Positions 1 to 55,800 of a DNA stretch of 64,000 nt are shown here, piece by piece. The notes under the pieces were generated by a model. The model was not told the DNA's origin and made no database searches. It saw only the letters and a list, made by a program, of their open reading frames with translations. Position 1 is the first letter of the stretch, and every line of letters starts with the position of its first letter. The position numbers and the translations under genes were made by a program. Source of the DNA: Macrostomum lignano. Its lineage: Eukaryota. The stretch covers positions 62,001-126,000 of the forward strand of contig NIVC01001774.1 of NCBI GenBank assembly GCA_002269645.1, written 5' to 3'.

Positions 1-1
1 C

Positions 2-820
2 AGCGAGGGCGAACGACAGAAGACCCAGCGCTTTCGCGTCTGGATCCCGGCCGGCAGTGCCATTAAGTCCGGAGATCAGCTTAGGCAAATATTGCTAAAG
101 CTGCACCCCGACCTTAAGGTCAACGGGCTCCTACACCACGCCACTTCCCGCAAGGAGAAGGGGGCTACGGTGATCCTAGGGCTCTCTGATGACTGGGCTA
201 AGCGCTTGCCGCCTAAGTCCACAATTCATATTGGTCTGACTCAGCTGACCATCCTCCGTTGCGAGGAGCGGAAAGCTGATGAAGCCAAGAATGCCAAAGC
301 TTCCGAAACCGGAACTGGGGCCCAGGCTCCTCCGGCAAAGAAGCCGAGGCAAACGGCCGATCCTATGCCCGGTAAGGCAGTTCGCGCTGCTGAAACCGGA
401 AATCGCAATCGCAGACCCGCCAGGAGCACCCGGAGGTCCGGCCTGATCCAGCGCGCGCTGGACCAGGCCAAGAACCTTCGTGCGCATCGTGAGCGGGCCC
501 GCGCTTCTCGCGCTCCACCCCAACAGCCAGAAGGCCAGACTCTAAGCGGGGAGGCTCCGACCGACTGGTTCGAGTCTGTGACTCACCAGGAGGCTGGCGC
601 CACCCGCATCGACCTGACCGACGAGGCAGAGGGGACGGGCAGTGACAGCACCGAAGCACGCAGGAGAGGCGACGGTAACGTCCACGCTGGGCTCACGTCC
701 GCGGAGGACTCCACAGCCACCCTAACTGCTGAGGACGCTGAAACTCCCATGGAGGTCTGCGGGTCACCCACCACTGAAAAGGAGGAGGATGACCTGCTCA
801 ACGATTCCCCAACTGCGTGA
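2..820 (+). CDS. ORF1 of LOA-like non-LTR retrotransposon (5' end outside window)
   Basis: Frame is open from position 2 (SEGERQKTQRFRVWIPAG...LKLHPDL...GATVILGL...HIGLTQLTILR). This resembles the DUF4780-type ORF1 region of LOA elements (recalled similarity), followed by a basic/acidic low-complexity tail. Stop at 818-820 abuts ORF2. Confidence 0.75.
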   Translation, partial: SEGERQKTQRFRVWIPAGSAIKSGDQLRQILLKLHPDLKVNGLLHHATSRKEKGATVILGLSDDWAKRLPPKSTIHIGLTQLTILRCEERKADEAKNAKASETGTGAQAPPAKKPRQTADPMPGKAVRAAETGNRNRRPARSTRRSGLIQRALDQAKNLRAHRERARASRAPPQQPEGQTLSGEAPTDWFESVTHQEAGATRIDLTDEAEGTGSDSTEARRRGDGNVHAGLTSAEDSTATLTAEDAETPMEVCGSPTTEKEEDDLLNDSPTA

Positions 821-822
821 TA

Positions 823-3800
823 ATGATCAGCAACCAGGGAATCCATTGCCTGCAGATTAATCTGCAGCACTGCGTCGCAGCCTCGGTCAACCTTATGCGT
901 TACGCCGAGCTCGACAAGCCGGGGCTCATCCTCGTCCAGGAACCCTGGACTCTCAGAGGTAAGCCTCAAAACGCCCCTGCTGGCTACAATTGTTTTTATA
1001 CTTACCCTCGCGAGGCCAACCAGCCTCCCAGAGCTTGCATCTTTGCGAGCAAAACGCTCAGTGCGTGGCTCAGATCGGACCTGTCCAACAGGGACATCTG
1101 CGTCATCCAATCCGAGGACCTTCTTCCTGGGAAGACCACCCTCATTGCCTCGGTTTACCTACCAGGCGATGCTGCGGTCGTCCCCAGAGCCCTCGCTACG
1201 CTGGTAGAGCTCTGCTCTGCCAAAAACTACGAGCTCATGGTTGCCGGCGACATCAACGCCCACCACACTCACTGGGGCAGCACTGGCATTAATCAGAGAG
1301 GCGAAGACCTCCTAGCCTACGTTGCCTCTACGACCCTCGAGTTCTGCAACTCTGGGTCCACCCCTACCTTTGACAACGGACGGTGGTCGGAGGTGATCGA
1401 CGCTACGCTCGCAACGCCCAGACTCTACCAGAGTATTGGGGCGTGGCGGGTGCTTCCAGTGTCCTCACTATCGGATCACAAGTTCATCTCCTTCAACCTA
1501 ATGGCCGCGCGTAGCGCAACTCGTGTTATGTGGAGACGGAACGCCAGAAATACGGATTGGGAAACCTTCGGGCTCGCCCTGAAGGAATTCCATCGGTCTC
1601 CTGGCCAACCATCCACGATCACGTCGTGCCGAGAGGCGGATGAGTGCGCGACTGTTTTGACAGAGACGCTAACCGCCGCCTTTGAGGCGTCCTGCCCTTT
1701 AAAAGCCTATAAAGGGAAAAAATCGGCGCCGTGGTGGAATCCCGAGCTCGGCAACCTCCGTCGCAGGGCTAAGAGACTCCACCGCAGAGCAACTAAAACT
1801 AAGAGCCCTGCAGACCAAACCGCCTATCATGAAGCAATTCATGAGTTTAAAAGGCAGGTTAGGAATGCAAAGGCTCAAAAATGGCGACAATACTGTGAGG
1901 AGCTAGAGGGCTCACGCCCCACCTCCAGAGTTGTGAAAGCGCTCACGCTGGACAAAATGTCTAAGCTCTCCTCGGTCAAACGCACCGACGGTACGTCCAC
2001 GGACAACCCAGGGGAAACGCTTGATGTAATGCTCACTGCGTTTTTCCCTAACGAGCCAGCTAACCAGACCACTCCGGATCACTCGGAGGGAGGTCACGCG
2101 CTGGCTGCATCTATCATCACGGAGGACCGCATTGTGAGAGCGGCAAATTCCTTCAAGCCTTTCAAAGCCCCAGGACCCGACGGCATTGTACCGGCCCTTC
2201 TAAGAGAGGCGGTTAAATGCCCAGGCTTCCTGCGCAAACTTTGCAGCCTTCTTCGGGCATGCATCACGCTTGGTTATGTCCCGCAGGCATGGACCGAGGC
2301 AAAGGTGATCTTTATCCCTAAGCCAGGCCGCCCGGACTACCATTCTATCAAATCCTTCAGACCGATCAGCTTGACCTCCTCCCTGGTCAAGCTGATGGAG
2401 AGACTGGTGCTTTGGCGCCTTCTCTCTGTTGAGCTGAAGAACAAACCTCTCAGCGAGAACCAGCACGCTTTTCGGGCGGGTCGCTCCACTGAAAGCGCGC
2501 TGCACGTCCTGGTCGATAAACTCGAGAAGGCCGTGCTTGGTAGTGGCTTTGCTCTGGGGATCTTCCTGGACATCATTGGCGCCTTCGATAACGTCCTCTT
2601 TGAGGCGTTCCGAAGAGCTCTTTGTGAGAGGCTAACGCACTCACATCTCACCAGATGGATCATGTACATGATCAGCCATCGCACGGCCACCGCCAGTCTG
2701 CTGGGCTACCAGAGGACGGTCCCCGTCTGCAAAGGTAGCCCGCAAGGTGGGGTGCTGTCTCCAGTTCTCTGGAATATGGTCATCGATGAGCTCCTCCGGG
2801 ATGTTCGGCCTGACCCCATTCTGAAAGTTGGATATGCGGACGATGTCACCGCGGTGGCATCTGGTCCGTCCCCTGATACCCTCAGGGACCTTCTTCAGAA
2901 CTTCATCTACGCTGCTGAGCAATGGGCGGACCGCTGTGGTTTAAGGCTCTCTGAGACTAAGACCGCAGTGATCATGTTCACCAGCAGGACCAAGTGGCAG
3001 ATTCGGCCGCTCACGCTTTACGGAAGGGAAATCCCCTTCTGCAAGCAGACTAAATGTCTGGGTATTACCCTGGACCACAGGCTGAACTGGTCTCCCCACG
3101 TTCAAACAAAAGCCAAAAAGGCCTTCGCAGTCCTCGCGCAATTGCGCAGGGCCGTCGGCACCACCTGGGGGCTCACCCCCAAGCGCCTCTGGTGGATCTA
3201 CACTGCAATGGTTAGGCCCGCTATCTCGTATGGCGGCCTGATCTGGGCTAGCGCCCTGCAGATAAAGACCTGTCTAGAGGCTCTCAGGAGAGCGCAAGGG
3301 CGCGCTTGTCGCACGATCATGAGCGCCCCTCCGTCTGCTCCTTACGATGGCCTCAACGCCTTCCTCAACATTCCTCCGCTGGACATCTTTGTCCGCAGGG
3401 AAGCGGCTAAGACTGCCCGCCGTCTAGCTGACGCTGGCATTCGAATCCAGCCCCATAGGGCCATGGCTAAGCGCAAGCTTCTGCCCCACGCTGACCTCTG
3501 CCTCAAGGACTTGAGAGACAGCGGCGGGCTCCACGTCCTATCTGACGGCGAACCCCGCACTCTCAACCTCTTTCAGCGCTACAAGGTCACCATCCCCTCT
3601 AGGGATGCTGCCAATGACCACTGGAATTTCCAGGAGGTCCATTGCTACACGGACGGATCCATCAAAGACGGTCGCGCCGGCTTTGGGGTCTGCATCATCA
3701 TCAACGGCCGCGTAATTGCCACGCATGCCCAGCACACTGGTAGACTCTCCACAGTCTTCCAGAACGAAGTCCTTGCCATCAGCTCTTGCGCTGCAGAGCT

Positions 3801-4527
3801 AAACGCCAAGGTTACGAGAGGAAAGACTATTGTCATCCACTCCGACAGCCAAGCGGCCTTACAGGCCCTTTGCCACACCACAACGAACTCCCGGACAGTC
3901 GCCGACTGCGCCCGGCAGCTCAACCTCCTGGCCAGAAGCAATACTGTCAGGCTGAAGTGGATCCCAGGGCACGCAGGGTTTCCGGGGAACGAGCTGGCAG
4001 ACACCCTCGCCAAGAGGGGCGGCTCTGGCTCTTTTTTCGGCCCTGCCCCCCTGGTCCCTATGCCCTTGACAGTCATCAATCGTCAGATCGACGACTGGGC
4101 TGACTCCCTCCACAGGGACAGATGGGCGGGCACCCAAAACTGCCGGCAATCTCGTGCCGCGGTTCCTTGCCCGTCTCACAGGCTCAGAAACATCCTTCTG
4201 AACCAGAATCGGAAGGATATTCGAGCCCTTGTCATGACCCTTACCGGCCATGGCTACCTCGCCAGGCACTGCTTCCTCCGAGGCGACCTCGAGAGCGAAA
4301 TTTGCCCCTTTTGCGAGTGCGACAATGAAGATGCTCAGCACTTTGTCTGTCACTGCCCTTTCTTTAACAGAGACCGGCTACGCTACCTCGGGCCGAACCC
4401 GTCCATTGACGAGGTTTGCCAGCCCGACAGCATCCCACGGCTCATCCAGTTCCTTCGGGCGACTAGACGAGCCAGTTTCTTCCCAACGGAAGATCACGCT
4501 GCAGGACGGACCGGCGGACCACCCTGA
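823..4527 (+). CDS. ORF2 polyprotein: AP endonuclease + reverse transcriptase + RNase H + C-terminal CCHC
   Basis: APE motifs LQINLQH, LVQEPW, GDINAHH, IDATL, SDH. RT motifs KAPGPDG, FRPISL, QHAFRAGRST, LDIIGAFDNV, GSPQGGVLSP, YADD. RNase H motifs YTDGS, NEVLAI, HSDSQAAL, WIPGH..GNELAD. Tail LTGHG...CPFCECDNEDAQHFVCHC. Uninterrupted; first ATG at 823. Confidence 0.97.
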   Translation: MISNQGIHCLQINLQHCVAASVNLMRYAELDKPGLILVQEPWTLRGKPQNAPAGYNCFYTYPREANQPPRACIFASKTLSAWLRSDLSNRDICVIQSEDLLPGKTTLIASVYLPGDAAVVPRALATLVELCSAKNYELMVAGDINAHHTHWGSTGINQRGEDLLAYVASTTLEFCNSGSTPTFDNGRWSEVIDATLATPRLYQSIGAWRVLPVSSLSDHKFISFNLMAARSATRVMWRRNARNTDWETFGLALKEFHRSPGQPSTITSCREADECATVLTETLTAAFEASCPLKAYKGKKSAPWWNPELGNLRRRAKRLHRRATKTKSPADQTAYHEAIHEFKRQVRNAKAQKWRQYCEELEGSRPTSRVVKALTLDKMSKLSSVKRTDGTSTDNPGETLDVMLTAFFPNEPANQTTPDHSEGGHALAASIITEDRIVRAANSFKPFKAPGPDGIVPALLREAVKCPGFLRKLCSLLRACITLGYVPQAWTEAKVIFIPKPGRPDYHSIKSFRPISLTSSLVKLMERLVLWRLLSVELKNKPLSENQHAFRAGRSTESALHVLVDKLEKAVLGSGFALGIFLDIIGAFDNVLFEAFRRALCERLTHSHLTRWIMYMISHRTATASLLGYQRTVPVCKGSPQGGVLSPVLWNMVIDELLRDVRPDPILKVGYADDVTAVASGPSPDTLRDLLQNFIYAAEQWADRCGLRLSETKTAVIMFTSRTKWQIRPLTLYGREIPFCKQTKCLGITLDHRLNWSPHVQTKAKKAFAVLAQLRRAVGTTWGLTPKRLWWIYTAMVRPAISYGGLIWASALQIKTCLEALRRAQGRACRTIMSAPPSAPYDGLNAFLNIPPLDIFVRREAAKTARRLADAGIRIQPHRAMAKRKLLPHADLCLKDLRDSGGLHVLSDGEPRTLNLFQRYKVTIPSRDAANDHWNFQEVHCYTDGSIKDGRAGFGVCIIINGRVIATHAQHTGRLSTVFQNEVLAISSCAAELNAKVTRGKTIVIHSDSQAALQALCHTTTNSRTVADCARQLNLLARSNTVRLKWIPGHAGFPGNELADTLAKRGGSGSFFGPAPLVPMPLTVINRQIDDWADSLHRDRWAGTQNCRQSRAAVPCPSHRLRNILLNQNRKDIRALVMTLTGHGYLARHCFLRGDLESEICPFCECDNEDAQHFVCHCPFFNRDRLRYLGPNPSIDEVCQPDSIPRLIQFLRATRRASFFPTEDHAAGRTGGPP

Positions 4528-4625
4528 CCGGCCCCACGCCTCTGCCTGTCTGCGGGCCTTCAGGGGCTAGCGGAATGGGCGACCCTCGCCTCCCCGCTGT
4601 GTCTACGGACCACCCTGCAGCTAAG

Positions 4626-7600
4626 TCAAAAGCCGGGCGACACCCGGTGAGCGGCGAACGCTCCCAGCCAGTCGATGCTAGCCAGCAGGCCGTACAGCGA
4701 GCTGCAGGCGTGGGCGTGGCGCACCGCCGACTGGGTCAGCGGGCCGGCCAGAGCCTCCAGGTCGAACGGATCGATGGCCGACTCCACCCGGCCAATCAGA
4801 GCCTCCAGCTGCCGATTGAACTCGGCATTGGCCGGGCTGTCCTCCCGGCGGGACAGCAGGGCGAACAGGAATCTGAGATCGAACAGCAGCTGTGCCAGCT
4901 GGTTTGGCGCCAGCTGCTGCTGCTGCGCTGGGCCGCTCTCGGCTGCTGCACCCGATAGCCGGGCTGTCAGGCAGCGGTCCACGATGGCCAACAGGCGGTC
5001 GGTGAGGCTGGCCAGCAGGTGCTGCAGGCTGGCCCGGCTCAGGGCGTGGCCGCCTCGTCTGCGGCGTGAGAGATTATCATATTTATCATATTTAACAAAA
5101 ATTCATAGAGCCTGACATTTCTCAAAATCGGGATATTCCGTCAATTCACTGTCGACTATCTAGGCTAGGGTTTGGGCTAGGGTCGGCAGTCACTGACCTA
5201 ATGTCACTGTCAAATGTCACTGACAGTCAAATGTCACTGGCAGTCAAATGTCACTGACAGTCAAATGTCACTGGCAGTCAAATGTCACTGACAGTCAAAT
5301 ATCACTGACAGTCGAATGTCACTGACAGTCAAATATCACTGACAGTCAAATGTCACTGACAGTCAAATATCACTGACAGTCAAATGTCACTGACAGAGTC
5401 AAATGTCACTGACAGAGTCAAATGTCACTGGCAGTCAAATGTCACTGACAGTCAAATGTCACTGACAGAGTCAAATGTCACTGACAGTCAAATGTCACTG
5501 ACAGTCAAAATGCCGTAGACCCTCAACGTTAACACTAATGTATGGATGACATTTCCCAAAAATTCCAAGCAATTTTATCCGAGAGCACAAGCACAGTCAG
5601 TCCCTATAATACTTAATGCAAGCGCCACACACTAAAGCTGGTTCCCACCTGCCCAGGTCGCGGCTCAGACCAAGCAGAAGCCGATGGCAGGGCCGCGAGG
5701 CGCACACCGGCACCATGGCGGAGGCGGCCGCGGTCGCGGCGGGGTCGGCAGAGGCGTCGCTGGAGGAGGATGAGTCGGCAGCCGCTGTGCGCCGATCCCA
5801 TCTAGCTGAGCCGGCTAAGAAAGCCATGCTCGAGCCTAGGACCTCTTCGGCGATGGCCGATTCAAATCGGCTGACGTGCCGAGTGCACAGGCCGTCCAAG
5901 TAGGCGCGGGCCAGCGACTCGGCGACGTCGCGCAGTCGCGGATCGGCTTTGGCCGCCTGCCGACGCAAATGACCGCCGCCGCCAGTTTGCGTCGATGCTG
6001 TTGTCAAGCTAGGCAGCAGCGTTGCCATAGCAACGCCCAGTCGCTGCATAGCCAACAGGCAGTGCTCCGAAGACGATTCGGCAGCCGCCTCCTGCGAGCC
6101 GAGCGACTCCAACCTGCCAGCGCACCGGCCAATGAAGTCGTCGAGCAGGCCGCGCACCGCAGCCAGACCGTCCTCGGAGCCGCCGCCTCCGTCAGCCATC
6201 TGGGCGGACTCGATGCTGGCGAACAGGCCGCGGACAGTTGTCCGACAAGCGTCGCACAGAGCCTGCAAGCGCGGCGTCAACAGCGCCAGCCTATTCGCTA
6301 CGGTCTCTTTAGCCGAGTCCGACCAGAGAAAAGCGGCCGGGTCCAGTTCGGCGTGAATCCGGCCGCGCCGGCCACTGTCCGAGTCAGCCTGTTGTCCGGC
6401 GCCGGCGCGAATGTCCGCCAGCAATTGGTCGAGGCTGTCGGACCAGCTGTTGTAGAGCGAGTCCAGGGCCGACTTGCACAGGGACTGCGAAGGTGGGACA
6501 GAAGATGAGTAGGCGTTTTTTTCAGTGAAACCCCTCTAAATTGCTCAAATTTTTATGGCGCAAAAATGATTAAGGCATCAACTGTATGCTCACTGACTCT
6601 GATGGATTTCTTATTAAGCGATTTCTCATTCGTCACCAACCTCTTTCCGTTCTCTCCGTCCGTACCACCTCCTTCCGTCACCCACCCACTCTTCTCTATT
6701 CGTAACCTCTGTCACCCACTCACTTCTCTAACCTCTCTCCGTCACCCACCTACCCTTCTCCAACCTCTGTCACCCACCCATCCTTCTCTAACCTCTGTCA
6801 CCCACCCATCCTTCTCTAACCTCTTTCCGTCACCCACCCCAGTCACACACGTCTCTCCATCACCCACCCCAGTCACATACAGCGTCACGCACCCTTTCCA
6901 CCCCCAACCCCACCACAGCCTCACCGTCAGCTTGGTGTGAAACACCGGCTGGAAAATCTCGCTCCACAGATCCAGGCGGCGCTCGAACACCGCCGAACAG
7001 CAGGTTGCCCAATCAGGCGACGCGTTGACCTCCTTGAACTGCGCCAGCAGGGCGCACCGGATGGAGTACAGGCTGGCTAGATCTGACACAAAATTCAGCG
7101 CCTCAACCAGCTGGTAGTTCAGGAATTCCCTCGTCCTTTATAGGGCGGTTGGGGAGGCGGGGAACAAGAAACGAAAAGTTGGGCGATGAGCAATAAACGT
7201 TAAAAATGAAAACAGATTTGCCAATAACGCTCACCCCAATCACCCACCTCCTCCATCACCCACCCCCTTATCTACCTCCATCACCCACCTCCTCCATCAC
7301 CCACCTCCTCCATCACCCACCTCCTCCATCACCCACCTCCTCCATCACCCACCTCCTCCATCACCCACCTCCTCCATCACCCACCTCCTCCATCACCCAC
7401 CTCCTCCATCACCCACCTCCTCCATCACCCACCTCCTCCATCACCCACCTCCTCCATCACCCACCTCCTCCATCACCCACCTCCTCCATTATCTACCTCC
7501 ATCAGTCAGTTAAACTCACCTCTCTAGCCACTCATCAGCGGCCGCCTTGAGCCCGCGCACAGTCAAGTCGCAGTCCTCCAGATTTTGCATCGGCTGATAG

Positions 7601-10600
7601 GCCAGCACATACTCTGGCAGGTGCCGAGTGCCCACCTGGGCAGAGTCAAAGCTAGCCAGAACCAGCCGAGCATTCACCTGCAGCTTCTCTTGAACTATTC
7701 GCTGCAGTAGTCCGGACTCTGCGGGTTACAGGATGCAGAGTTATTCTATTAACACAGCACTAGAGGAGCATCAATAAGGCCAATTAAAAAACCTACCGAA
7801 TTGAGCAGACGATGAGAACAGCGTGTGACAAATCTCAACTGACGATAGCAAATTTGTTGCTACTAGAAGAAACTGCGCTTTAGAAGTCTCAGTTTCCATG
7901 TCGCGAAATGTTAACTCGATTGATTGCTGCAGAGTATAAGCGGGGTTGCGGTGCCACGCGGCTGAACTATTGGATATTATTGGGAATTAAGTATCCCGAT
8001 ATTTGAGTTAGAAACTCGCGAGACTAGATTTCTATTCTAGATGTTCAATAGATCTCCATTTTAGATGTCCAATAGATCTCCATTTTAGATGTCCAATAGA
8101 TCTCTTTTCTAGATGTCCGATAGATCTCTATTCTAGATGTCCGATAGATCTCCATTCTAGATGTTCAATAGATCTCCATTCTAGATGTCCGATAGATCTC
8201 CATTCTAGATGTTCAATAGATCCCCATTCTAGATGTTCAATAGATCTCCATTCTAGATGTTCAATAGATCTCCATTCTAGATGTTGAACAATCCAGCTCA
8301 GACCCACAACTTAAAGGGCCATTATTCCAATCAGCAACAGAAGCAGCAACCAACCGATCTCAGACTGAAAAAGTCGGCAATAACGGCTTCAATGCCCAGG
8401 CCATTGAGCAGCATGAGGGCGGCCAGGTGCTGGGCGAAGGCTTGGCTCCGATCGCACAGGCTGCCTGCGCTGAATGTGATTGGCTGGGCCAGCAGCTCGC
8501 GGCATCTGGCAACCACCGGCTTCTTCAATTGGCCAACGTCAGACCAGCGCAGCAGAGCCTCAGCTTTGAGTCCGGCCTCCTCTAAATCGGGATTCAACTC
8601 CAGATGCGTGTGCACGTGAGATGCGATGAAGAATAACTGAGCGGCTGACAGGCAGCTCTGCGATTCCAGGCTGGAGTACACCTGGCACAGAATGAGTAGA
8701 ATATGAAATTCATTTCACACTCTATTCTTACTACTTGTAAGTAGCGATGTCTTTTTCTTCTTAGCGAGTTATGGGGAGAGCTTTTAGGCACTGCCGCAAA
8801 TCAAGGGAGGCAAGCAGTCATTGCCCTATTCGCTGACCCCTTTAGAACGCAGACGCTCACACAGGGTGTACAGTGGCTCTGACTGCCATTGTCAGGTAGT
8901 ATGTACACTCTGTGTCTGATGGGGGTGGCCGCTTAGCTGCTCACCCCTCTCTCCTGGCTGCAGCTGCGACTAAGACAGACACTGACTGTCTCAGTGTGCC
9001 TCAGTGTCTGTCTTAGTGTCTTTCTCAGTGTCTGTCTTAGTGTCTGTCTCAGTGCCTGTCTTAGTGTCTGCCTCAGTGTCTGTCTCAGTGTCTGTCTTAG
9101 TGTCTGTTTCAGTGTCTGTCTCAGTGTCTGTTTCAGTGTCTGTCTCAGTGTCTGTTTCAGTGTCTGTCTCAGTGTCTGTTTCAGTGTCTGTCTCAGTGTC
9201 TGTCTCAGTGTCTGTCTCAGTGCCTGTCTTAGTGTCTGCCTCAGTGTCTGTCTTAGTGTCGGCCTCAGTGTCTGTCTTAGTGTCTGCCTCAGTGTCTGTC
9301 TTAGCGTCTGCCTCAGTGTCTGTCTTAGTGTCTGCCTCAGTGTCTGTCTTAGTGTCGGCCTCATAGTGTCTGCCTCAGTGTCTGTCTCAGTGTCTGTCTC
9401 ATAGTGTCTGCCTCATAGTGTCTGCCTCAGTGTCTGCCTCATAGTGTCTGCCTCAGTGTCTGTCTCATAGTGTCTGCCTCAGTGTCTGTCTCATAGACTC
9501 ATAGTGTCTGCCTCATAGTGTCTGCCTCAGTGTCTGTCTCATAGTGTCTGCCTCAGTGTCTGCCTCATAGTGTCTGCCTCATAGTGTCTGCCTCAGTGTC
9601 TGCCTCATAGTGTCTGCCTCAGTGTCTGTCTCATAGTGTCTGCCTCAGTGTCTGTCTTAGTGTCTGCCTCAGTGTCTGTCTCATAGTGTCTGCCTCATAG
9701 TGTCTGTCTCATAGTGTCTGCCTCAGTGTCTGCCTCAGTGTCTGTCTTAGTGTCTGCCTCATAGTGTCTGCCTCAGTGTCTGTCTCAGTGTCTGTCTCAG
9801 TGTCTGCCTCAGTGTCTGTCTTAGTGTCTGCCTCATAGTGTCTGCCTCAGTGTCTGCCTCAGTGTCTGTCTCAGTGTCTGTCTCAGTGTCTGCCTCAGTG
9901 TCTGTCTCATAGTGTCTGCCTCAGTGTCTGCCTCAGTGTCTGTCTCATAGTGTCTGCCTCATAGTGTCTGCCTCAGTGTCTGCCTCAGTGTCTGCCTCAG
10001 TGTCTGCCTCAGTGTCTGCCTCAGTGTCTGCCTCAGTGTCTGCCTCAGTGTCTGCCTCAGTGTCTGTCTCATAGTGTCTGCCTCAGTGTCTGTCTCAGTG
10101 TCAGACTCAGTGTCCGTCTCAAGCGTATTTGTGTCCGCTTTGTATGTCTTGATAGCATCCGTATTATAAGTGTTCATCTTAGCGTCGTTTTCAGCCTTCC
10201 AGACTTCATTCAGCCCCCTGGGAGGGACCAGTGTGCTAGTCTAACTATACTAAATCAATGTGCTACACATGCCCTAGCCAGCTCCGCACCAGTTCAGGCG
10301 TGTCCAGCAGAAGGCGGATCTGGGCGCCGATTTGACTTCGCCTGACTCGCAATTCGAATCTGGGATCCACCGCCTCCTGGCCGACGCCGACTCCGTCACC
10401 ATGGCGACGCCGGGCGAATGCTTGCAGATGACGACGCTCGCGTTGTAGTCTGGTCCGATGGGCGCTCAGCTGAGCGAGGCTGTCGTTGATCTCCTGCGCG
10501 CTGCCGCTCATGGTTTTGATGACGTCAGCGGCCACGATGAGCTCGCGGTAACGCTCACTTGAGGGGGGCGTGTGAGGTTAAATCCACTTCAGAATTCTGT

Positions 10601-11050
10601 TACAGACAGGCTAGCACACTGCATGTACAATTGGATAGACAGACAAAACACGAGTTGACAGGCAGAGAATCAGAACAGTCACAAATAGCTTGCATTAGGT
10701 TGACAGATCGACTGAATTCCATTACACTGACCAATGTCAGAGGCGCGGAGCTTTATATCTGTTCATCTGTCTGAAATACTGACTGACTGACTGACTGACA
10801 CACACACACAGACAGGCAGGCAGACAGACACAGGCAGACAGACAGGCAGGCAAGCAGGCAGACACTAAGACAGACATACACAGACAGGCAGACAGACAGA
10901 CTTGAGAAACAATAGTGTTAACTCAAGCACAACTCACCCAACAAGGAATCGAAGCTCCTCTTTCTTTCTTTCAATCTCATTTCGCGTCCTCTTCTCAATG
11001 GCGCGCACTTGCTCCACTGTATTTTCTTCAAACAGATTAAGAACATCCAT
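4626..11050 (-). CDS. COG1: Conserved oligomeric Golgi complex subunit 1 (7 coding exons, possibly C-terminally truncated)
   Basis: Exons (minus): 10938-11050, 10290-10557, ~8355-8681, 7520-~7718, 6925-7135, 5649-6484, 4626-5058. All GT-AG with consistent phases, except an ambiguous exon 3/4 junction. Motifs LFEENTVEQVR...EIERKKEELRFLVG/ERYRELIVAADVI, QIRLLLDTPEL/VYSSLE, R/RGGHAL, QLLFDLRFL, IDPFDL and SSLYGLL match the COG1 family. About 795 aa. Confidence 0.9.
5195..5510. repeat. 17-bp minisatellite (CAGTCAAATGTCACTGA)n in COG1 intron 6
   Basis: About 18 near-identical tandem units visible. Confidence 0.95.
6630..6900. repeat. Degenerate C-rich tandem repeat (CTCTGTCACCCACCCATCCTTCTCTAAC-like) in COG1 intron 5
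   Basis: Repeated GTCACCCAC / CTCTAACCTCT motifs. Confidence 0.8.
7225..7505. repeat. 16-bp minisatellite (CATCACCCACCTCCTC)n in COG1 intron 4
   Basis: About 16 tandem units. Confidence 0.95.
8030..8290. repeat. 24-bp minisatellite (TCTAGATGTTCAATAGATCTCCAT)n in COG1 intron 3
   Basis: About 10 units, each containing the palindromes TCTAGA and AGATCT. Confidence 0.93.
8985..10110. repeat. 12/14-bp minisatellite (TCAGTGTCTGCC / TCATAGTGTCTGCC)n in COG1 intron 2
   Basis: About 1.1-kb array; explains the RQTL and VSVS repeat ORFs. Confidence 0.97.
10780..10905. repeat. CAGA/CAGG-type microsatellite in COG1 intron 1
   Basis: ACTG, CA and CAGACAGGCA runs. Confidence 0.8.
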
Positions 11051-31400: not shown

Positions 31401-34400
31401 CGATGCTGTTGAGTTTGAGGTGTTCTGTGTATGCGAATGGCTCTCGGATGCTGTTGAGTTTGAGGTGTTCTGTGTATGCGAATGTCTCTCCGATGCTGTT
31501 GAGTTTGAGGTGTTCTGTGTATGCGAATTTCTCTCCGATGCTGTTGAGTTTGAGGTGTTCTGTGTATGCGAATTTCTCTCGGATGTTTCTGTGCTCAAGT
31601 TGATCAGTTCGTTATATCCCAGTTATTTGAAACTTGCCACTGACACCATTCGCTTCGCTCAGGTGATCAACCTGATCGTCATGGTGCAGGACGGCAGTTC
31701 GCCAGTTGTGGCTGCCGCACTGGACAAAGTGCTGGACATTCTGCACCAGTCGACTGACCTGTACTCAGGCGAGATTGCCAACTTGCAAGACGACCGAGTG
31801 ACGTCCGATTATGTTGGTGGCCTAATGGCGGTAAGCAAATTTGTTGGGTTTTCTATTTCGGACCATCCTCAGCATTCAGTTAGTCATTCGAGTGCCTGTT
31901 AAAACCGCTCATAAACAACCTTGCAGAGCGGGCCCAGATTGCCGGAGAAGAAGCGGCATTCGATGCCGGCTCAGCGACGTGAGTACCTGTCAATCTGGCG
32001 ACAACTTCGTGGACTCTGAGCTTGAAATTACTGTAATATAGGCAGCTAGAAAATCCAACTGGAAAAAAATTCATTCAATGCTCACCTCTCTATTTTGTTT
32101 CCATTGACCAGCCCCATTGTTAACTTGCAGGTCCGAGACCCTCAGAGGTCATGAAGGAGCACATTAGCCAACTGTTAGGTACCTTAGTTTCATATGCATG
32201 CATTTCGGCCCCTCAATTGCTGCTTGGCTTTGGCGATAACTTGCCTATTCATCAGGCCAGCCTCCTAGATTAATGTAATTACGAGGCCGCAGTCTCCTTT
32301 TCTCTTTCAGCTGCTTCTCCTCTCCATCTTTATTCCTAAGACTAATGACCCGTCATTAGGGAAGTCGCCAATCAATCCCTCCTCATGCTAGACTGCGGCT
32401 GGGGCTCCGTCACTTCTTCACTTCCCCTTTTTTCAAGGTGGCTACTGCCATGACACAGACCCTTCACCTGTATCGATTCAATAATTGTCGTTGGAAACAG
32501 GGCTGAAATTATGCAGAATTAATTTTCTTCTGCATTGATCCTTAATTTACAACATGGCTCTGAATAAGTCTTCTCAATTTTATAGAAGAGATGAGATGGA
32601 AGAAGACGGGAACGGAAAGATAGGAGGGGAGATTAGAGTTGAAGAGAACAGAAGAGAGAAAACAGAAGAGGAGAGGAGAACTATGGTTTTGTAAATATAG
32701 CTTTCTCACTGTATCGCATCTAAATCTAACACCTCAAATCTAACACCGCTCGCTCAAAATCAGTTTGCAGTGAAATTCGAACCAATTGCTAAAGCCAGTT
32801 ATTGATTGCGGTGCCAGACTTAGTGGCTGGACTACTTAACTACCGCCATAGCCTACATAATCATAATTAGGCGCTAAAACATCCAAAAACTCCACCCTCA
32901 AACCGGGGCGCAGAGAATTCGGCCAGCGCTATGCAGTCATTGCGCGACACGCCAGATTACCTGCTGCATTACCTGGAGAACGACGACAACTGGAATTTCG
33001 ACATTTTGGCTCTGGAACGAGTCACCGACCGCAAACCGATGGTGCACCTGGCCATGCGGACGCTGCGCAGATTCCAGGTGTGCCAGTACCTGCAGTGCAG
33101 CGAGGACACCATGCTGCGGTGGCTGCAGGTGATTCAGGACCACTACAGGGCGGACAACTGCTACCACAATGCCACACACGGAGCCGACGTGATGCAGTGC
33201 TCGGCCTATTTCCTGAGCCGAGACCGGGTCAGGCTGGCCTTCGACGAGACTGACGAAGCCGCTTCGCTACTTGGCGCTCTGGTGCACGACTTGGACCATC
33301 CGGGCAGGACCAACCCGTTCCTGATTAACTGCCGACACCGCCTGGCGCTGCTGTATAACGATATGTGAGTTTGAGAAACTCGGAGCGTGAGAAGCTGCTA
33401 GAACTTGAGTAAACTCAGAGATGAAGGAGTTAACGCATTGCTAAGAGGGTTACGAGGGCCGGCTAGGGTTATGCTGTGTTTTTTCCGCACCAATTGCTTT
33501 GAAAATTTACAGGCAGTTTTCCGTGTATGCAATTAATCATCATATAAATTGCCAAGTCGGTTTGTCTATGGATTTCAGCTTCATTAGTCTCTGACTGAAG
33601 TCAGGGGCCGTAGCCCAGAGGTCTGGCGCGGCGCTCTCCTGTACCAGCGGCCCAGGCTCGATTCCAAGTGCAGTCACATTAAGTTGGGGCTAAATTGGAA
33701 TCTCGGCTTGGCTCTGCTCGGGCAATTAACGGCCTTGAGAGCCAACCCCCAAGGCACAGTGAAGTGTACATGCCTAACGATAAATAAAGTTAGGGCCGCC
33801 GTACACTCCTGTGTGAGTGTGAGCCTGTGCGTATGACTGCGTACGTATCCGCGCGCTTGTGTGCCTGCTCAGGGGAGTCGGGCGGAATGGGCAGCAATGC
33901 CTCTCGCCGGTTGTGCGACAATGTCGCTTAAAGTGCGCCAGGGTGCACACAGCCTCCTGCATCTATCTATCTAGATATGTCTGGCTGAAGTCAGTTTTCA
34001 GCATTCGGCGTTCAAGAAAATTGAACTTAGTCTGGTGGCCCAGACTACGATGTGAAATGTCGTAAGCGGTAATTTCGTCCGTTACAAAGTAAATATTACA
34101 CATTAATATTAAACTATGGATTGAAAACGCCTGTAAACAATCAGCCCCAATCGCTGCCCCCACCCAATTCTTCATTGCAGCTCAGTGCTGGAGAGCCATC
34201 ACGTCTCATTAGCTTTTCAACTGACAACTAAAGACGATAGAATAAACATATTTAAAAACATGAGCACAGACGACTACAAGCAACTCAGGCAGAGCATTGT
34301 TGACGTTGTCCTGGCAACAGAGATGGCCAAGCACTTCGAGCACGTTGGTAAATTTGCCAATCAAATTCTGGCACCGCTGCTGGCCATGGAGGAGGAGGCG

Positions 34401-36038
34401 GAAGGGGAGGGCGGGGCTGCCAGCCAGCCAATCAGCGAGGAGGAGGTGCAGGAGCTGCTCACCCGGCCTGAGAATCGCAGCCTGATCAGGCGGGTGCTCA
34501 TCAAGTGCTCGGACGTCAGCAACCCCTGCAGGCCGTTGAAGCTGTGCAAAGAATGGGCCCGACGAATCTCAGAGGAATATTTTCTGCAGGTAAGAAATCT
34601 GCTTTTAATGTATTTACTTTCTTGCACAGCTGCTCAGGTAAAAGAACGTGCATTATATTTTCAAATCATTTCTTAAACCATTTCTTAGAAATCAGGTCAC
34701 TTCTTACAACTTAAGCCATTTCTTAGAAATCAGGTCACTTCTTACAACTTAAACCATTTCTTAGAAATCAGGTCACTTCTTACAACTTAAGCCATTTCTT
34801 AGAAATCAGGTCACTTCTTACAACTTAAGCCATTTCTTAGAAATCAGGTCACTTCTTACAACTTAAGCCATTTCTTAGAAATCAGGTCACTTCTTACAAC
34901 TTAAGCCATTTCTTAGAAATCAGGTCACTTCTTACAACTTAAGCCATTTCTTAGAAATCAGGTCACTTCTTACAACTTAAGCCATTTCTTAGAAATCAGG
35001 TCACTTCTTACAACTTAAGCCATTTCTTAGAAATCAGGTCACTTCTTACAACTTAAGCCATTTCTTAGAAATCGCGCAACTTCTTAGATCGGAAGCTACT
35101 TTTGAACATTGCTTTGAATTTTCGTTAATTCTAGGAAAGCGATTATATTTTCCTAGATAGAAGACATTTAAACATTCAAAAGTGGATCCGCTTCTAGAAA
35201 GACGTAATTAACAAAAAATGATAGCAAAACAATATTTTCAATGTTTTTTCGACGCAAATTCAAAGTAAATGCTTGCGTAATGTACTTTTTCGTGCGAAAT
35301 ATGAAGTTGCCCTTTGTCGCCACTTGAACCCTGGCAAAAATACTACATATACAGTAGCAATATCGCATCGCCAAAAATGAAGTAACAACCCAATCAATTC
35401 AATGGCCCTTCAGACTGACGAAGAGAAGTCCCAAGGTTTGCCCGTAGTGATGCCAATGTTCGATAGGGCTACCTGCAACATGCCCAAGTCGCAGACCAGC
35501 TTTATTGACTTCTTTCTCAAGGAGATGTTCACCGTTTGGCACCGTGAGTTGCGGGCTGGATGTCCGGGATTGAGAATTGAATGTACATAAGTTATCATTT
35601 AGATGCGTGAATCAGACACATTCTAAACGACAATCAGACACAGTCTAACTGAGAATCAGACACAGTCTAACTGAGAGTCAGACACATTCTAACTGAGAAT
35701 CAGACACAGTCTAACTGAGAATCAGACACATTCTAACTGAGAATCAGACACAGTCTAACTGAGAATCAGACACATTCTAACTGAGAATCAGACACAGTCT
35801 AACTGAGAATCAGACACAGTCTAACTGAGAATCAGACATATCCTATATGAGCGGTACAAATGAGAGTAAAACACGGAGTCATACTACTACTTGAGAAGTA
35901 GTTGAAAGCCGCCGAAGTAGCTAAAAGCCGCCATTCACCTGCACCACCTTCGCAGAATTCTGTGATGTACCGGTCCTGCTGGAGAATCTGAACGCTAACT
36001 ACGAGTACTGGAAGAGCCTTATCGATGTTGACAGCTGA
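19490..36038 (+). CDS. PDE8: cAMP phosphodiesterase, PDE8 family (REC-like, PAS, catalytic HD domain), 15 exons, ~829 aa
   Basis: Exons: 19490-19570, 22378-22425, 24630-24940, 25269-25320, 27861-28034, 29815-29964, 30054-30142, 30287-30530, 31663-31830, 31927-31978, 32131-32178, 32914-33364, 34181-34589, 35414-35543, 35956-36038. All phases consistent. MGC N-terminus, [12 protein letters not shown] ([23 protein letters not shown]....RRKSG), [60 protein letters not shown]. Confidence 0.95.
19660..20245. repeat. 19-bp minisatellite (GAGGATGGGGAGACACTGT / GAGGATGGGGAGGTACCGT)n, PDE8 intron 1
   Basis: About 30 units of two variant types. Confidence 0.97.
21045..21640. repeat. (CTAAT/CTAAC)n pentanucleotide microsatellite, PDE8 intron 1
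   Basis: About 600-bp array; a smaller related patch at 22770-22910. Confidence 0.97.
22470..22732. repeat. 11-bp minisatellite (CATGCTGTGCT)n, PDE8 intron 2
   Basis: Tandem units; explains the [10 protein letters not shown] ORFs. Confidence 0.93.
23805..24570. repeat. 20-bp minisatellite (AGAAGCCATATGAACGATAG)n, PDE8 intron 2
   Basis: About 37 units. Confidence 0.97.
26050..26500. repeat. 28-bp minisatellite (AGAGACAGACTGATGCAGACAGGTCGAT)n, PDE8 intron 4
   Basis: About 15 units. Confidence 0.95.
27165..27730. repeat. 22-bp minisatellite (TAGGAGTGTCTTTAAGCATCAG)n, PDE8 intron 4
   Basis: About 25 units; an isolated partial unit recurs at ~29085-29105. Confidence 0.95.
28068..28562. repeat. 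22/20-bp minisatellite (GCACAATCCTACACAGAACCAG)n, PDE8 intron 5
   Basis: About 23 units. Confidence 0.95.
29165..29770. repeat. 44-bp minisatellite (CTGGTCACACATCCAGTCAGTCAGTTGAGCACACCTATGCTTAA)n, PDE8 intron 5
   Basis: About 14 units. Confidence 0.97.
30560..31590. repeat. 45-bp minisatellite, PDE8 intron 8
   Basis: About 23 units of GAGTTTGAGGTGTTCTGTGTATGCGAATATCTCTCCGATGCTGTT; unit length divisible by 3 explains the long repeat ORFs. Confidence 0.97.
33602..33975 (+). mobile_element. tRNA-derived SINE, copy 1 (PDE8 intron 12)
   Basis: Pol III A-box TAGCCCAGAGG (33611) and B-box GGCTCGATTCC (33655), unique body, (ATCT)n tail; a near-identical inverted copy at 41320-41690. Confidence 0.75.
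34672..35075. repeat. 38-bp minisatellite (GCCATTTCTTAGAAATCAGGTCACTTCTTACAACTTAA)n, PDE8 intron 13
   Basis: About 10 nearly identical units. Confidence 0.97.
35625..35840. repeat. 22-bp minisatellite (GAGAATCAGACACAGTCTAACT)n, PDE8 intron 14
   Basis: About 9 units. Confidence 0.95.
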
Positions 36039-52811: not shown

Positions 52812-55800
52812 ATGAGCAGCGATTCTCCTGCAGATGATTTGTATGGCAAAATATGGGAGGCGTCCAGCAAGGATGATAGAGAGGAGCCCGAGCCATTGTT
52901 CCCGCCTCCGCCAACATCGCCACCGCCACCTCCGCCAACATGTGAGCCACCGCTCCCCCCGCCGCCTGCATCAGCTTCCACCGATGTGGCAGTCCGGTCA
53001 ACTCTATGCAGTACCCGGTATTTAGGTGCTCCGTCAGATCATTCCCAGCTGCCCAGCTGCGTCTCTGTAGTCATGGATGCAGAGTCTGGCGACGAATTAG
53101 AAGCTGGCTCTGACGAGAATATCTATTCTGATTTGACTTTGGACGAGAAGATGCGAATTACCAGCATCTCAGAGGAGGATTACCTGCGCGAAGGATTTAT
53201 GCAGATGCAGTACGGCTATCGCTGGATTAAGCGCTACCTTCGGCTCACCAATTACGAGTTGTTTATCTATGCGAAACAGTCTAGCATCGTTTCCAAGAAA
53301 ATTTTGCCGCTAAGCAAACTGCTGGATGTCAGGGTAAACAAAGGCAAGTTGGAGCTCGCTCTGAGCATGGACCGGCCGATCACCTTAGTGTTCAGGTAAA
53401 TCACTGCTTAATGATCTAATAGATTTATTAGTAGGCACTTATGAACTCTAACCATTCAGTAGACTGCGAACTGCCCTCCCAGATCTGTCAGTAGTCTGCG
53501 AACTGCCCTCCCATATCTGTCAGTAGTCTGCGAACTGCCCTCCCATATCTGTCAGTAGACTGTGAACTGCCCTCCCAGATCTGTCAGTAGTCTGCGAACT
53601 GCCCTCCCATATCTGTCAGTAGACTGTGAACTGCCCTCCCAGATCTGTCAGTAGTCTGCGAACTGCCCTCCCAAATCTGTCAGTAGACCACGAACTGCCC
53701 TCCCAGATCTGTCAGTAGACTGCGAACTGCGAACTGCCCTCCCAGATCTGTCAGTAGACTGCGAACTGCGAACTGCCCTCCCAGATCTGTCAGTAGACTG
53801 CGAACTGCGAACTGCCCTCCCAGATCTGTCAGTAGACTGCGAACTGCGAACTGCCCTCCCAGATCTGTCAGTAGACTGCGAACTGCGAACTGCCCTCCCA
53901 GATCTGTCAGTAGACTGCGAACTGCCCTCCCATATCTGTCAGTAGACTGCGAACTGCGAACTGCCCTCCCAGACCTGTCAGTAGACTGCGAACTGCCCTC
54001 CCAGATCTGTCAGTAGACTGCGAACTGCCCTCCCAGATCTGTCAGTAGACTGCGAACTGCCCTCCCAGATCTGTCAGTAGACTGCGAACTGCGAACTGCC
54101 CTCCCAGATCTGTCAGTAGACTGCGAACTGCCCTCCCAGATCTGTCAGTGCACTTTAAACACATTGATGCCGTTTAATTTCAAATATTTTCGATAACATT
54201 GAGATTTAATCCTTGGTCTGAGAATTGCACTACATCCTGAAGACTAAAGCGAGAGCTTTCAAACGATGTCCGCATATCCTTATTTCATTGGTTTAAATTG
54301 TCTCAAGGCAGTGCAGTCGGTATGACTGCGCCCTCATCTTTGCGTACATCGCCAAGTACGAGCATATGTTCGTTTTTATCACCCCTCTCCGCTCTCTTTC
54401 TCTCTTCCGTTGCATCTCTCGCAGAACGACTTGATTTTGTTAACAAGGCCGAAGTTAGCCTAAGCATTACAGTAAATGCTACCTTCACATTATGATAAGG
54501 CACAGATACAGTATACAGACACTGGCTGTTTTAAAAGCGGCCCTCTAGGCTCTTGACACTTGTTTCTAAATTTAGCCCAGCCGACATTCCACCCCCCCGA
54601 GTTAGTTCACCTCACTCAGACTTCAGCCATCGTCGCTCAAGCTACTCTTAGTAACAATATGAAGCTTCCACTGTACTTTATATGCTATATATATGTGTAT
54701 GTGTTTATACTCGTATATATTTATGAGCTGCGACTGGCAAACACAGGGCCGTTGACGATTCGGCAGAGGAAACCTATGACGAGCCGCCGGAGACGGTGTG
54801 GCAGAACTGCATCTATAGTAGAATCATATCTTTGAACCTGCCGCCGGGCTTCCTAGACGAGGAAGAGCTCGGCTGGGCTAAAGTGGTCGGCCGGCACAAA
54901 TACTTATTCGCATTGAATCGGAGGCGAGCCTATTTAGCCTACTATCGATCCGATGAAGAGTTCCGCGCTCACGTGCAGACTCATCGGATGTCGTTGCGCA
55001 CCTGCTTAATAAAACCTAATCCTACTAAGTCCGGCCTAGATCTGATATCGGCCAGTGTCCGGCTAACTCTGCAATTCGAGGACAGTCAGCGCTTGGAGAA
55101 ATTTCGCTCGTTAGTTGAATCGGCTATTCGCACTGATTGGACAGGCGAGGAGTCTGAGCCAGCCGCCGCCGCTGCCACAGACGCTTCAGCAGCCACCAAC
55201 CCAGTCAGCCAGCAGCTGCTCCAGGTCAACTCGAACTTGTCCACTTCCACATCGTCTCTGAGCCTGCCTGTTCGTCATCAGCGGTCAGCTTCAGACAGTT
55301 CAGCAGTAACAGCAGCAGCAGCCGCTGCCGTGATGACCGCCGTGCTTAAAAACGAATCAAATCGAGTTTGCGGAGACTGCGGCGCCGCTAATCCGCTGTG
55401 GGCCTCCTTGAATCTCTGCGTCACCCTGTGCGACGATTGCAGCGGGCATCACAGAAAACTGAGCACCGACTTCTCCAAGGTGCACGGGCTTAAATTTGAC
55501 GTGAAAGTCTGGACTGACGAAGTTGTACAGCTCTTTTTGCAGCTTGGAAACGGCGCTTCTAACAGGTGAGACTAATTCTGCGATTGGGCTGCGCTGCCAG
55601 CCTCCCAGATCCTCAGTTGTTGGGCCACCGCCACCCGATACCAGATCCTCAGTTGCTGGGCCAGCCTCCCAGATCCTCAGTTGCTGGGCCAGCCTCCCAT
55701 ATCCTCAGTTGCTGTGCCACCGCCACCCGATCCCAGATCCTCAGTTGCTGGGCCAGCCTCCCAGATCCTCAGTTGCTGGGCCAGCCTCCCAGATCCTCAG

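Follow-up and report, generated by a model that had tools for sequence, protein, structure and literature searches.

A full-length LINE antisense in the last coding exon of a Macrostomum lignano COG1 copy, flanked by a 462-bp direct repeat that leaves two alternative last exons

A full-length, young LINE lies in antisense orientation inside the last coding exon of one of the COG1 copies of Macrostomum lignano. The assembly holds at least three COG1 copies, and the LINE is found in one of three loci. Since the duplication accompanying the LINE left a complete exon with its own 3′ splice site beyond the element, the locus has two alternative last exons: a proximal one, cut by the LINE, that ends the protein at 838 aa, and a distal, intact one that gives 940 aa. 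The best explanation, and in our judgment the probable one, is target-primed reverse transcription of the LINE into the last COG1 exon with a target-site duplication of 461/462 bp. The window, that is, the whole stretch of 64,000 nucleotides analyzed here, was taken from contig NIVC01001774.1 (GCA_002269645.1), which corresponds to L003; the window matches the reverse strand of L003 at 100% identity and begins inside the LINE.

The identity of the gene is based on the homologue search and not on the Pfam analysis of single exon-sized minus-strand ORFs, which gave no match. The public gene model of the locus (P0002, 940 aa), whose exons map onto the window at 100%, contains the Vps51/COG1 N-terminal domain (PF08700) and is named COG1 in UniRef. 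The word-indexed homologue search returned the M. lignano cluster only, and the orthologues came from an exhaustive phmmer search: 580 relatives were found at E ≤ 0.001 and 32 at E ≤ 1e-30, mostly 800–1000 aa in length. The coordinates of the gene and of the other features are collected in Table 1.

Table 1 Features of the COG1 locus and its LINE (window positions, unless L003 is indicated)
Feature	Position	Strand	Remarks
LINE ORF1, C-terminal 273 codons	1–820	+	TGA at 818–820; no Pfam match
LINE ORF2	823–4527	+	1234 aa, open; endonuclease, reverse transcriptase, RNase H, C-terminal Cys/His motif
LINE 3′-UTR	4528–4630	+	ends ...CCCTGCAGCTAAGTCAAA(A), without a long poly(A) tail
LINE-derived TGA stop	4626–4628	-	with the Phe codon, reverse complement of TCAAAA (4626–4631)
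LINE-derived Phe codon	4629–4631	-	last COG1 residue of exon copy A; 3′-terminal bases of the LINE
Probable target-site duplication, right-hand copy (copy A)	4631–5092		direct repeat, 461/462 bp
Probable target-site duplication, twin (copy B)	L003 22241–22702		off-window, beyond the LINE 5′ end
Sole difference between copies A and B	4670	-	coding-strand codon CGG in copy B, TGG in copy A (Arg825Trp)
COG1 gene, in-window part	4626–11050	-	start codon at 11050; tblastn of P0002 on L003
COG1 exons	~11050–10937, 10556–10275, 8681–8355	-	tblastn of P0002
COG1 exon	~7926–7519	-	gapped tblastn match, short intron probably spanned
COG1 exons	~7179–6925, 6484–5648, 5058–4632	-	tblastn of P0002
COG1 penultimate coding exon	5648–6484	-	residues 417–695; tblastn of P0002, 100%
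COG1 last intron (GT..AG)	5059–5647	-	only its last 34 nt (5059–5092) duplicated
17-bp tandem array	5209–5509		within the last COG1 intron
COG1 last coding exon, copy A	4632–5058	-	residues 695–837, ends ...HRVSPG; tblastn 143 aa, 99.3%

The minus-strand COG1 frame (5102–4626) ends with ...SSLYGLLASIDWLGAFAAHRVSPGF and a stop codon, the last residues being ...AAHRVSPG-F-stop. The first-pass annotation, which was made from the window sequence, had derived the final Phe and the TGA from the terminal bases of the LINE, and the minus-strand translation agrees with this. It had also pointed to a C-terminal segment that COG1 normally carries beyond this point. This segment is real, as three M. lignano proteins and 25 orthologues testify. 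Each of the three M. lignano COG1 proteins in the annotation runs on (...SPG-SAAAYS...SVLPA...PRFGLLPVS...SFYNKFNSILFKS), and the RFxLLP core is nearly invariant among the 25 orthologues, with F in 24 and P in all of them. Orthologues ending at SPGF are thus ruled out. The frame through copy A, ending at residue 838, lacks HNxLPL, RFxLLP, and SFY..MSxxWF, and no 838-aa form is present in the COG1 protein cluster. At two other COG1 loci of the same assembly, L001 and L002, the LINE is absent, as the annotation had anticipated for empty sites or paralogues, and the reading extends 103 residues further, through the HNxLPL, RFxLLP, and SFY..WF motifs.

Two independent comparisons pin down the 3′ end of the LINE. 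One is that the homology of L001 and L002 to the window ends exactly at 4631. The other is provided by a related LINE, L004 (ORF2 61% identical), which ends in the same ...CTGCAGCTAAGTCAAA: its 3′-UTR aligns up to ...CCCTGCAGCTAAGTCAAA and then diverges, the terminus ...GCTAAGTCAAA is common to the two elements, and their flanks are unrelated. The 3′ end therefore lies at 4626–4631, where the first-pass annotation had placed it, and not well to the left of 4626. Base 4631 is common to the target (the T of the Ser codon TCA) and to the A-run of the LINE, so that the junction between exon copy A and the LINE (CCCGGCTTTTGACTTAGCTGCAGG) is ambiguous by 1 base. The terminal 3′ motif of the LINE occurs once in the window. 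The notion that the LINE-derived stop is something special was rejected: the antisense LINE end (TTTGACTTAGC) contains stops in two of the three frames within three codons, and an immediate stop is for this reason unremarkable.

When the part of the LINE to the left of the window is included, both ORFs are open, in accord with the earlier description of the element as intact. The full-length ORF1 (488 aa, open from its ATG) begins outside the window, 647 nt to its left (L003 21697, reverse strand). In ORF2, an AP-type endonuclease (PF03372 (Exo_endo_phos)/PF14529, residues 13–224) is followed downstream by a reverse transcriptase (PF00078 (RVT_1), residues 500–750) and an RNase H (PF00075, residues 940–1068, E = 3.4e-14). 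By this domain content, its separate upstream ORF1, the lack of terminal repeats, and the defined 3′ end, the element is classified as a non-LTR (LINE) retrotransposon of the AP-endonuclease type with RNase H, and it is probably still active. A copy of the LINE with 98% protein identity is present in another M. lignano gene model, P0006 is a relative with 57% identity, and the named relatives among the matches include Metarhizium reverse transcriptases and the label 'X-element'. No second copy or terminal repeat was found in the window by self-BLAST of positions 1–4700, no further LINE copy or 3′ fragment in the window or in the COG1 and LINE loci compared, and no other genomic copy by an exact-product look-up of ORF2. 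The insert measures 5821 bp including the filler described below, and the LINE about 5.75 kb. At the other end of the element, homology of the 5′-UTR (block GTATGAGACAGACCAGG) to L004, which is cut at its 5′ end and has no 5′ flank, begins about 30 nt into the GC-rich end. The 5′ junction is formed by about 70 nt of filler with 6% GC, situated between the GC-rich LINE body and the left duplicate; this AT-rich stretch may, alternatively, belong to the element as its 5′ end.

To the left of the window, beyond the LINE, the contig repeats window positions 4631–5092, and 461 of the 462 bases are the same (99.78%, one mismatch). Within the duplicated segment, the end of the intron with the 3′ splice site accounts for 34 nt and exon sequence for 427 nt. 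The empty sites L001 and L002 have a single copy of the segment; upstream they are collinear with copy A, and downstream with copy B. Along the gene, the order is as follows: the penultimate exon, an intron of about 590 nt, copy A, the antisense LINE, the filler, the duplicated intron end (34 nt), and then copy B in full, which runs on into ...GGCTCAGCTGCC. HNxLPL, RFxLLP, and SFY..MSxxWF are kept in this off-window copy and in L001 and L002. The last exon of P0002 matches copy B at 100%, while copy A corresponds to residues 695–837 with one mismatch (tblastn); the public model thus splices to the distal copy. A target-site duplication and the remaining COG1 codons had been expected to the left of the window. 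Both are there, but the codons stand within a complete second exon and are not simply displaced. Together with the LINE-free L001 and L002 and the open ORFs, the near identity of the two copies supports the proposal of a recent antisense insertion into the last coding exon of COG1. At the only position where the copies differ, Arg (residue 825) is found in copy B, L001, and L002, and R or K in 15 of the 25 orthologues. Both copies carry variants private to this locus relative to L001 and L002 (for example, CCCTGAGCCGGG as against CCCTCAGTCGGG in the paralogues), and because these variants are the same in the two, copies A and B are considered to come from one haplotype.

In the mechanism that we favor, the full-length LINE would insert antisense through target-primed reverse transcription, with both nick positions being those suggested by the junctions. 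The first nick would fall on the COG1 coding strand, after ...GTCGCCCGGC(T), and its 3′ OH would prime cDNA synthesis from the LINE RNA end ...GUCAAA. The second would fall on the other strand, 461/462 nt away, between ATATT and TAACAAAAA, at the AT-rich end of the preceding intron. With such a spacing, fill-in would copy the last 34 nt of the intron, its 3′ splice site included, together with 427 nt from the beginning of the exon, and the 5′ junction would be left with about 70 nt of filler at 6% GC. Two features of the insertion count against this explanation. One is the first-strand nick site: it is rich in GC, whereas AP-type endonucleases typically cut at AT-rich sites. The other is that a duplication of 462 bp is unusually long, far above the usual 5–20 bp, and that its left copy is separated from the LINE body by the filler.

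GC-rich sites and junction filler are seen in endonuclease-independent or repair-associated insertions. Such features would suit a history in which a 462-bp tandem duplication arose first and the LINE entered later between its copies, or one in which the LINE was captured in double-strand-break repair without a staggered cut. Nevertheless, copy A begins exactly at the LINE 3′ end, the element has no short flanking duplication of its own, and L001 and L002 hold the segment once. Since an insertion exactly on a pre-existing duplication boundary would be a coincidence, we regard these histories as improbable.

The structure described here comes from a single draft assembly, built from long reads, of a highly repetitive and partly duplicated genome, and an artefact must also be weighed: the true allele might have a short duplication, that is, a split exon, or an inserted and an empty haplotype might have been joined into a chimera. 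The draft, Mlig_3_7, represents a genome of which more than half is repetitive, in the DV1 line there are additional chromosomes, and near-identical duplicated blocks (≥ 95% identity) add up to 180 Mb (PMC5730564); the duplicate copies themselves differ at 1 base in 462. However, the left junction (LINE 5′ end, 70-nt filler, 34 nt of intron end, exon start) is novel and cannot be made by joining an inserted and an empty haplotype, the same locus-private variants are present in both copies, and the single difference between the copies speaks against one sequence laid down twice. An artefact is thus unlikely.

Under target-primed insertion, the consequences for the transcript would depend on the choice between two acceptors. 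Splicing from the donor of the penultimate exon to acceptor A (...CTCTCACGCCGCAG, followed by ACGAGG) would yield the 838-aa protein without HNxLPL, RFxLLP, and SFY..WF, while splicing from the same donor to the sequence-identical acceptor B, 6.3 kb further, would yield the normal 940 aa. The truncated form would be expected to dominate from this locus because acceptor A still has the native intron upstream of it and is the first to be transcribed. The earlier claim of truncation therefore stands in part: the conserved 103 residues are absent from the copy A reading, but the intact exon B follows the LINE. As P0002 splices to this distal copy, truncation is possible and not forced, although P0002 may have been assembled from paralogue reads, as the methods in PMC5730564 suggest. 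The proposed buffering by paralogues is supported by the two LINE-free loci: owing to at least two further intact COG1 copies, the insertion is tolerated, and a strong phenotype is not expected.

The first-pass annotation had also considered co-option, in which the LINE stop and the downstream antisense sequence would be a selected new C-terminus or 3′ end of a shortened COG1 isoform. The geometry, with an in-frame stop directly at the junction, is what this reading has in its favor. However, the insertion is very young (flanking copies 99.8% identical, ORFs intact) and occurs in one of three loci, the LINE supplies one residue while the best-conserved C-terminal motifs are lost, and the gene strand of the LINE proper contains neither AATAAA nor ATTAAA. 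Furthermore, the human C-terminal COG1 truncation p.P888fsX900 is a disease allele (PMC2722986). Co-option is thus hardly credible, and the case is an ordinary paralogue-buffered insertion whose single unusual feature is the long duplication. It would be a long shot to suppose that the LINE family habitually nicks the second strand hundreds of bp away, regularly producing duplications of several hundred bp, and that the distal acceptor is spliced-leader trans-spliced, a process common in M. lignano (PMC5730564). If this were true, exon insertions would regenerate an intact exon start and splice site and be intrinsically less damaging.

A caution follows from this locus: a window ending inside a transposon hid half of the insertion event, and a locus that offers two alternative last exons was read as one where an essential Golgi tethering subunit had lost its end. 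Flanking a full-length LINE of the AP-endonuclease type, the 462-bp duplication would be among the longest of its kind on record; if reads confirm it, it bears on how widely the two nicks can be spaced in target-primed reverse transcription. A natural marker is also provided by the LINE and the T at 4670 for one COG1 copy among the near-identical M. lignano homeologues.

Intragenic LINE insertions that disrupt coding exons are known from disease-causing human L1 and from the Drosophila I-factor. The COG1 insertion resembles them in that a young, antisense non-LTR element stops the frame at once and that other copies are free of the insertion; it differs in that the duplication restores the 3′ splice site along with 427 nt at the exon's 5′ end, leaving an undisrupted exon downstream. 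R9, whose target-site duplication is 126 bp, is likewise a non-LTR element with a duplication far above the usual length, implying a second-strand nick far from the first. However, R9 is site-specific, has a restriction-like endonuclease, and makes a long duplication that is constant in the family, whereas the COG1 LINE is of the AP type, is not evidently site-specific, and is known from one insertion, with a duplication about 3.7 times that of R9. In the literature on long duplications, we found indirect statements only and no maximum length for AP-type LINEs. According to a summary of the work of Gilbert et al. (PMC2912911), the L1 insertions in HeLa cells include some with 'extremely long TSDs', so that very long duplications occasionally accompany AP-type LINE insertions; as summarized there, they belong to 5′-truncated L1 in cultured cells, whereas the COG1 LINE is full-length and in an assembled animal genome. 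Finally, the human COG1-CDG allele c.2659-2660insC, p.P888fsX900 (PMC2722986; PMC6771879), resembles the copy A reading: the C-terminal ~10% is lost and, as we infer, the same motifs with it, NILPL and RFGLLPLS being located at about residues 897–917 in P0091 (982 aa, vertebrate-type COG1). In that allele, a frameshift hits a single-copy gene and a glycosylation disorder results, whereas M. lignano retains other intact copies and an intact distal exon.

Exon-sized open frames of COG1 were found on the minus strand at about 4626–11050 of the window. When joined, these frames matched one protein cluster only in a homologue search, that of conserved oligomeric Golgi complex subunit 1 from Macrostomum lignano: P0001 (937 aa), P0002 (940 aa), P0003 (750 aa) and P0004 (429 aa). 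The contigs encoding the cluster members gave three loci in GCA_002269645.1. One of these, L003 (NIVC01001774.1), carries the P0002 gene and matches the reverse-complemented window at 100% identity. A window position x thus lies at 21051 − x in L003, and the DNA left of the window was taken from L003 21051–33013. At least two further COG1 loci, including L001 and L002, are free of the LINE, share the same downstream neighbour gene and have an intact last exon. Such additional loci agree with what is reported for line DV1, namely extra chromosomes and duplicated blocks totalling 180 Mb (PMC5730564).

The first-pass annotation had proposed that an antisense LINE supplies the COG1 stop codon, and this was confirmed. 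The minus-strand frame ends in ...SSLYGLLASIDWLGAFAAHRVSPGF followed by the stop, and its last two codons, Phe and TGA, are TCAAAA (window 4626–4631) read in reverse complement. Two independent lines fix the LINE 3′ end here: L001 and L002 align up to window base 4631 and no further, and the 3′-UTR of L004, a related LINE from a Logan assembly (ORF2 61% identical), aligns with that of the window LINE up to ...CCCTGCAGCTAAGTCAAA and is unrelated beyond. The LINE end thus does not lie well to the left of 4626. Since two of the three frames of the antisense terminus contain a stop within three codons, the immediate stop needs no special explanation. The in-frame stop is also the sole point in favour of the suggestion that the LINE was co-opted as a new C-terminus or 3′ end, which was not borne out. 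In L004 (Logan ERR14788467), a 142-aa antisense ORF was called at 5954–6382; it adjoins the LINE 3′ end, and its TAG stop is supplied by the same ...GCTAAGTCAAA terminus; this could be a second antisense insertion in a gene or a chance ORF in GC-rich DNA.

The LINE does lie antisense in the last coding exon as proposed, but it need not truncate COG1, because a full copy of the exon stands behind the element. In a BLAST comparison of the first 5200 window bases with L003, a second match was found beyond the LINE in addition to the identity match: window 5092–4631 corresponds to L003 22241–22702, with 461 of 462 positions identical. The resulting order of the parts is listed in the table.

Features of the COG1 locus (first six rows in order along the COG1 strand), the LINE and the neighbouring sequence
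Feature	Position	Strand	Remarks
Penultimate COG1 exon	window 6484–5648		
Last intron			590 nt
Last exon, copy A	window 5058–4632		residues 695–837
Insert	L003 16420–22240		5821 bp
Duplicated intron end			34 nt, including ...CTCTCACGCCGCAG
Last exon, copy B (complete)	L003 22275–23013		residues 695–940
LINE ORF1 end	to window 820	+	
LINE ORF2	window 823–4527	+	AP-endonuclease, reverse transcriptase, RNase H domains
LINE 3′-UTR	after ORF2	+	103 nt
COG1 intron tandem array	window 6667–6839		period 28 bp
COG1 intron tandem array	window 7239–7500		period 16 bp
COG1 intron tandem array	window 8025–8285		period 24 bp
COG1 intron tandem array	window 8986–10121		period 12 bp
3′5′-cyclic nucleotide phosphodiesterase exons	window 32931–34676	+	PF00233
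ArfGap and RhoGAP domain protein exons (ARAP-like)	window 52812–60820	+	

The junctions were read from a four-way alignment of the two copies with L001 and L002. Upstream, copy A remains collinear with L001 and L002 far into the intron, and it passes into LINE sequence after ...GTCGCCCGGC(T). For copy B, collinearity with these loci holds downstream, and the break lies upstream of AATATGATAAATATGATAATC. Judged from the sequence, the segment has the layout of a target-site duplication. Its length is 461 or 462 bp, as the LINE A-run shares one of the bases. Variants common to the two copies are absent from L001 and L002, which indicates that both copies come from the same haplotype. The main rival, mis-assembly of the locus, is opposed by the left junction, a novel sequence that cannot come from joining inserted and empty haplotypes, and by the single base at which the copies differ: CGG is changed to TGG at window 4670, giving Trp in copy A for Arg825, while Arg is found in copy B, L001 and L002, and R or K in 15 of 25 orthologues. 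Had a tandem duplication come first, the LINE would have had to fall on its boundary by coincidence, and no such duplication is seen in L001 or L002.

As for the target-site duplication, we infer the following order of insertion events. If the insertion took place by target-primed reverse transcription, two nicks follow from the junctions. The first would lie between GGC(T) and (T)CAGCTG of the COG1 coding strand, and its 3′ OH would have been extended on the LINE RNA end ...GUCAAA. The second would have cut the opposite strand 461/462 nt off, between ATATT and TAACAAAAA (between window 5092 and 5093), an AT-rich site at the intron end, and fill-in of the long overhangs would have produced the duplication.

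Both ORF1 (488 aa) and ORF2 (1234 aa) of the LINE are uninterrupted. At the 5′ junction, a stretch of about 70 nt (L003 22171–22240; about 1120–1190 nt left of window base 1) separates the left duplication copy from the GC-rich 5′ end of the LINE. It has 6% GC as compared with about 60% in the remainder of the insert, and opens with the 11-mer ATGATAAATAT, which recurs where the duplicated target ends. Homology to the L004 5′-UTR begins some 30 nt into the GC-rich portion. The LINE, of about 5.75 kb, is therefore probably full-length or close to it, and the AT-rich stretch is probably junction filler. As L004 is cut at the contig end, the stretch could instead belong to the element; filler, slippage and a true element end are the candidate origins. 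The family is young, since a copy of it with an internal deletion and 98% protein identity lies in P0007, a gene model of an older M. lignano annotation. Several UniRef models of that annotation (P0007–P0017) join pieces of the LINE ORF2 to host domains such as LRR, kinase, ankyrin and WD40; these are probably chimeric predictions spanning intragenic LINE copies. The flanks of the two elements compared, the window LINE and L004, are unrelated, with no sign of site specificity. ORF1 also matches itself in inverted orientation at window 407–506, though imperfectly, with 75% identity across 104 nt.

Several observations concern tandem repeats. The last COG1 intron contains a 17-bp array (GTCAAATGTCACTGACA; 17.4 copies) at window 5209–5509, and the array at the same position in L001 and L002 is about 1.1 kb long. 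The four other COG1-intron arrays produce long spurious ORFs on both strands, and the ARAP-like gene introns are packed with tandem repeats that yield long proline-rich pseudo-ORFs.

The C-terminal segment that the first-pass annotation had given for COG1 is real. P0001, P0002 and P0003 have 103 further residues after ...HRVSPG (SAAAYSAQSQ...SVLPA...PRFGLLPVS...SFYNKFNSILFKS), and orthologues do not end at SPGF. Exhaustive phmmer gave 580 relatives of P0002, and in the alignment of P0002 with 25 of these, three motifs follow the break: HN(V/I)LPL, RFxLLP (F in 24, P in all 25 and LL in 20–21 of the 25) and SF(Y/F)..MSxxWF.

No difference separates acceptors A and B in the final 34 bases of the intron or the next 427 exonic bases. 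Use of acceptor A would give 838 aa without the conserved motifs, whereas use of acceptor B would remove the LINE and copy A within a 6.9-kb intron and give the normal 940 aa. The public model P0002 uses acceptor B. This model comes from genome-guided RNA-seq assembly (PMC5730564), the genome having near-identical paralogues, and is not proof of a full-length mRNA from L003. We expect acceptor A to be the main one used, since it is the first of the two to be transcribed and the native short intron still precedes it. The antisense LINE has no AATAAA or ATTAAA on the gene strand; the first two hexamers after the copy-A stop, the only two before copy B, are both AATAAA and lie in the AT-rich filler just upstream of it. 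In human COG1, a frameshift at P888 causes a glycosylation disorder (PMC2722986; PMC6771879). The conserved motifs of a vertebrate-type representative begin just past that position, which makes it likely that the lost tail contributes to function. The truncated COG1 would probably be a loss-of-function or weakened product rather than a new isoform.

Overall, the LINE-derived COG1 end stands as first described, and so does its reading as a young insertion in a coding exon, buffered by paralogues and ordinary in kind; the reading lacked the spare exon and gains no support for co-option. The one unusual feature is the target-site duplication of about 462 bp, which is far longer than usual and provides a spare, complete exon beyond the LINE. 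The duplication of the rotifer element R9 is reportedly 126 bp. That duplication is termed 'exceptionally long' in a title cited in PMC2861651, and 'extremely long TSDs' are mentioned in PMC2912911 for 5′-truncated L1 insertions in HeLa cells.
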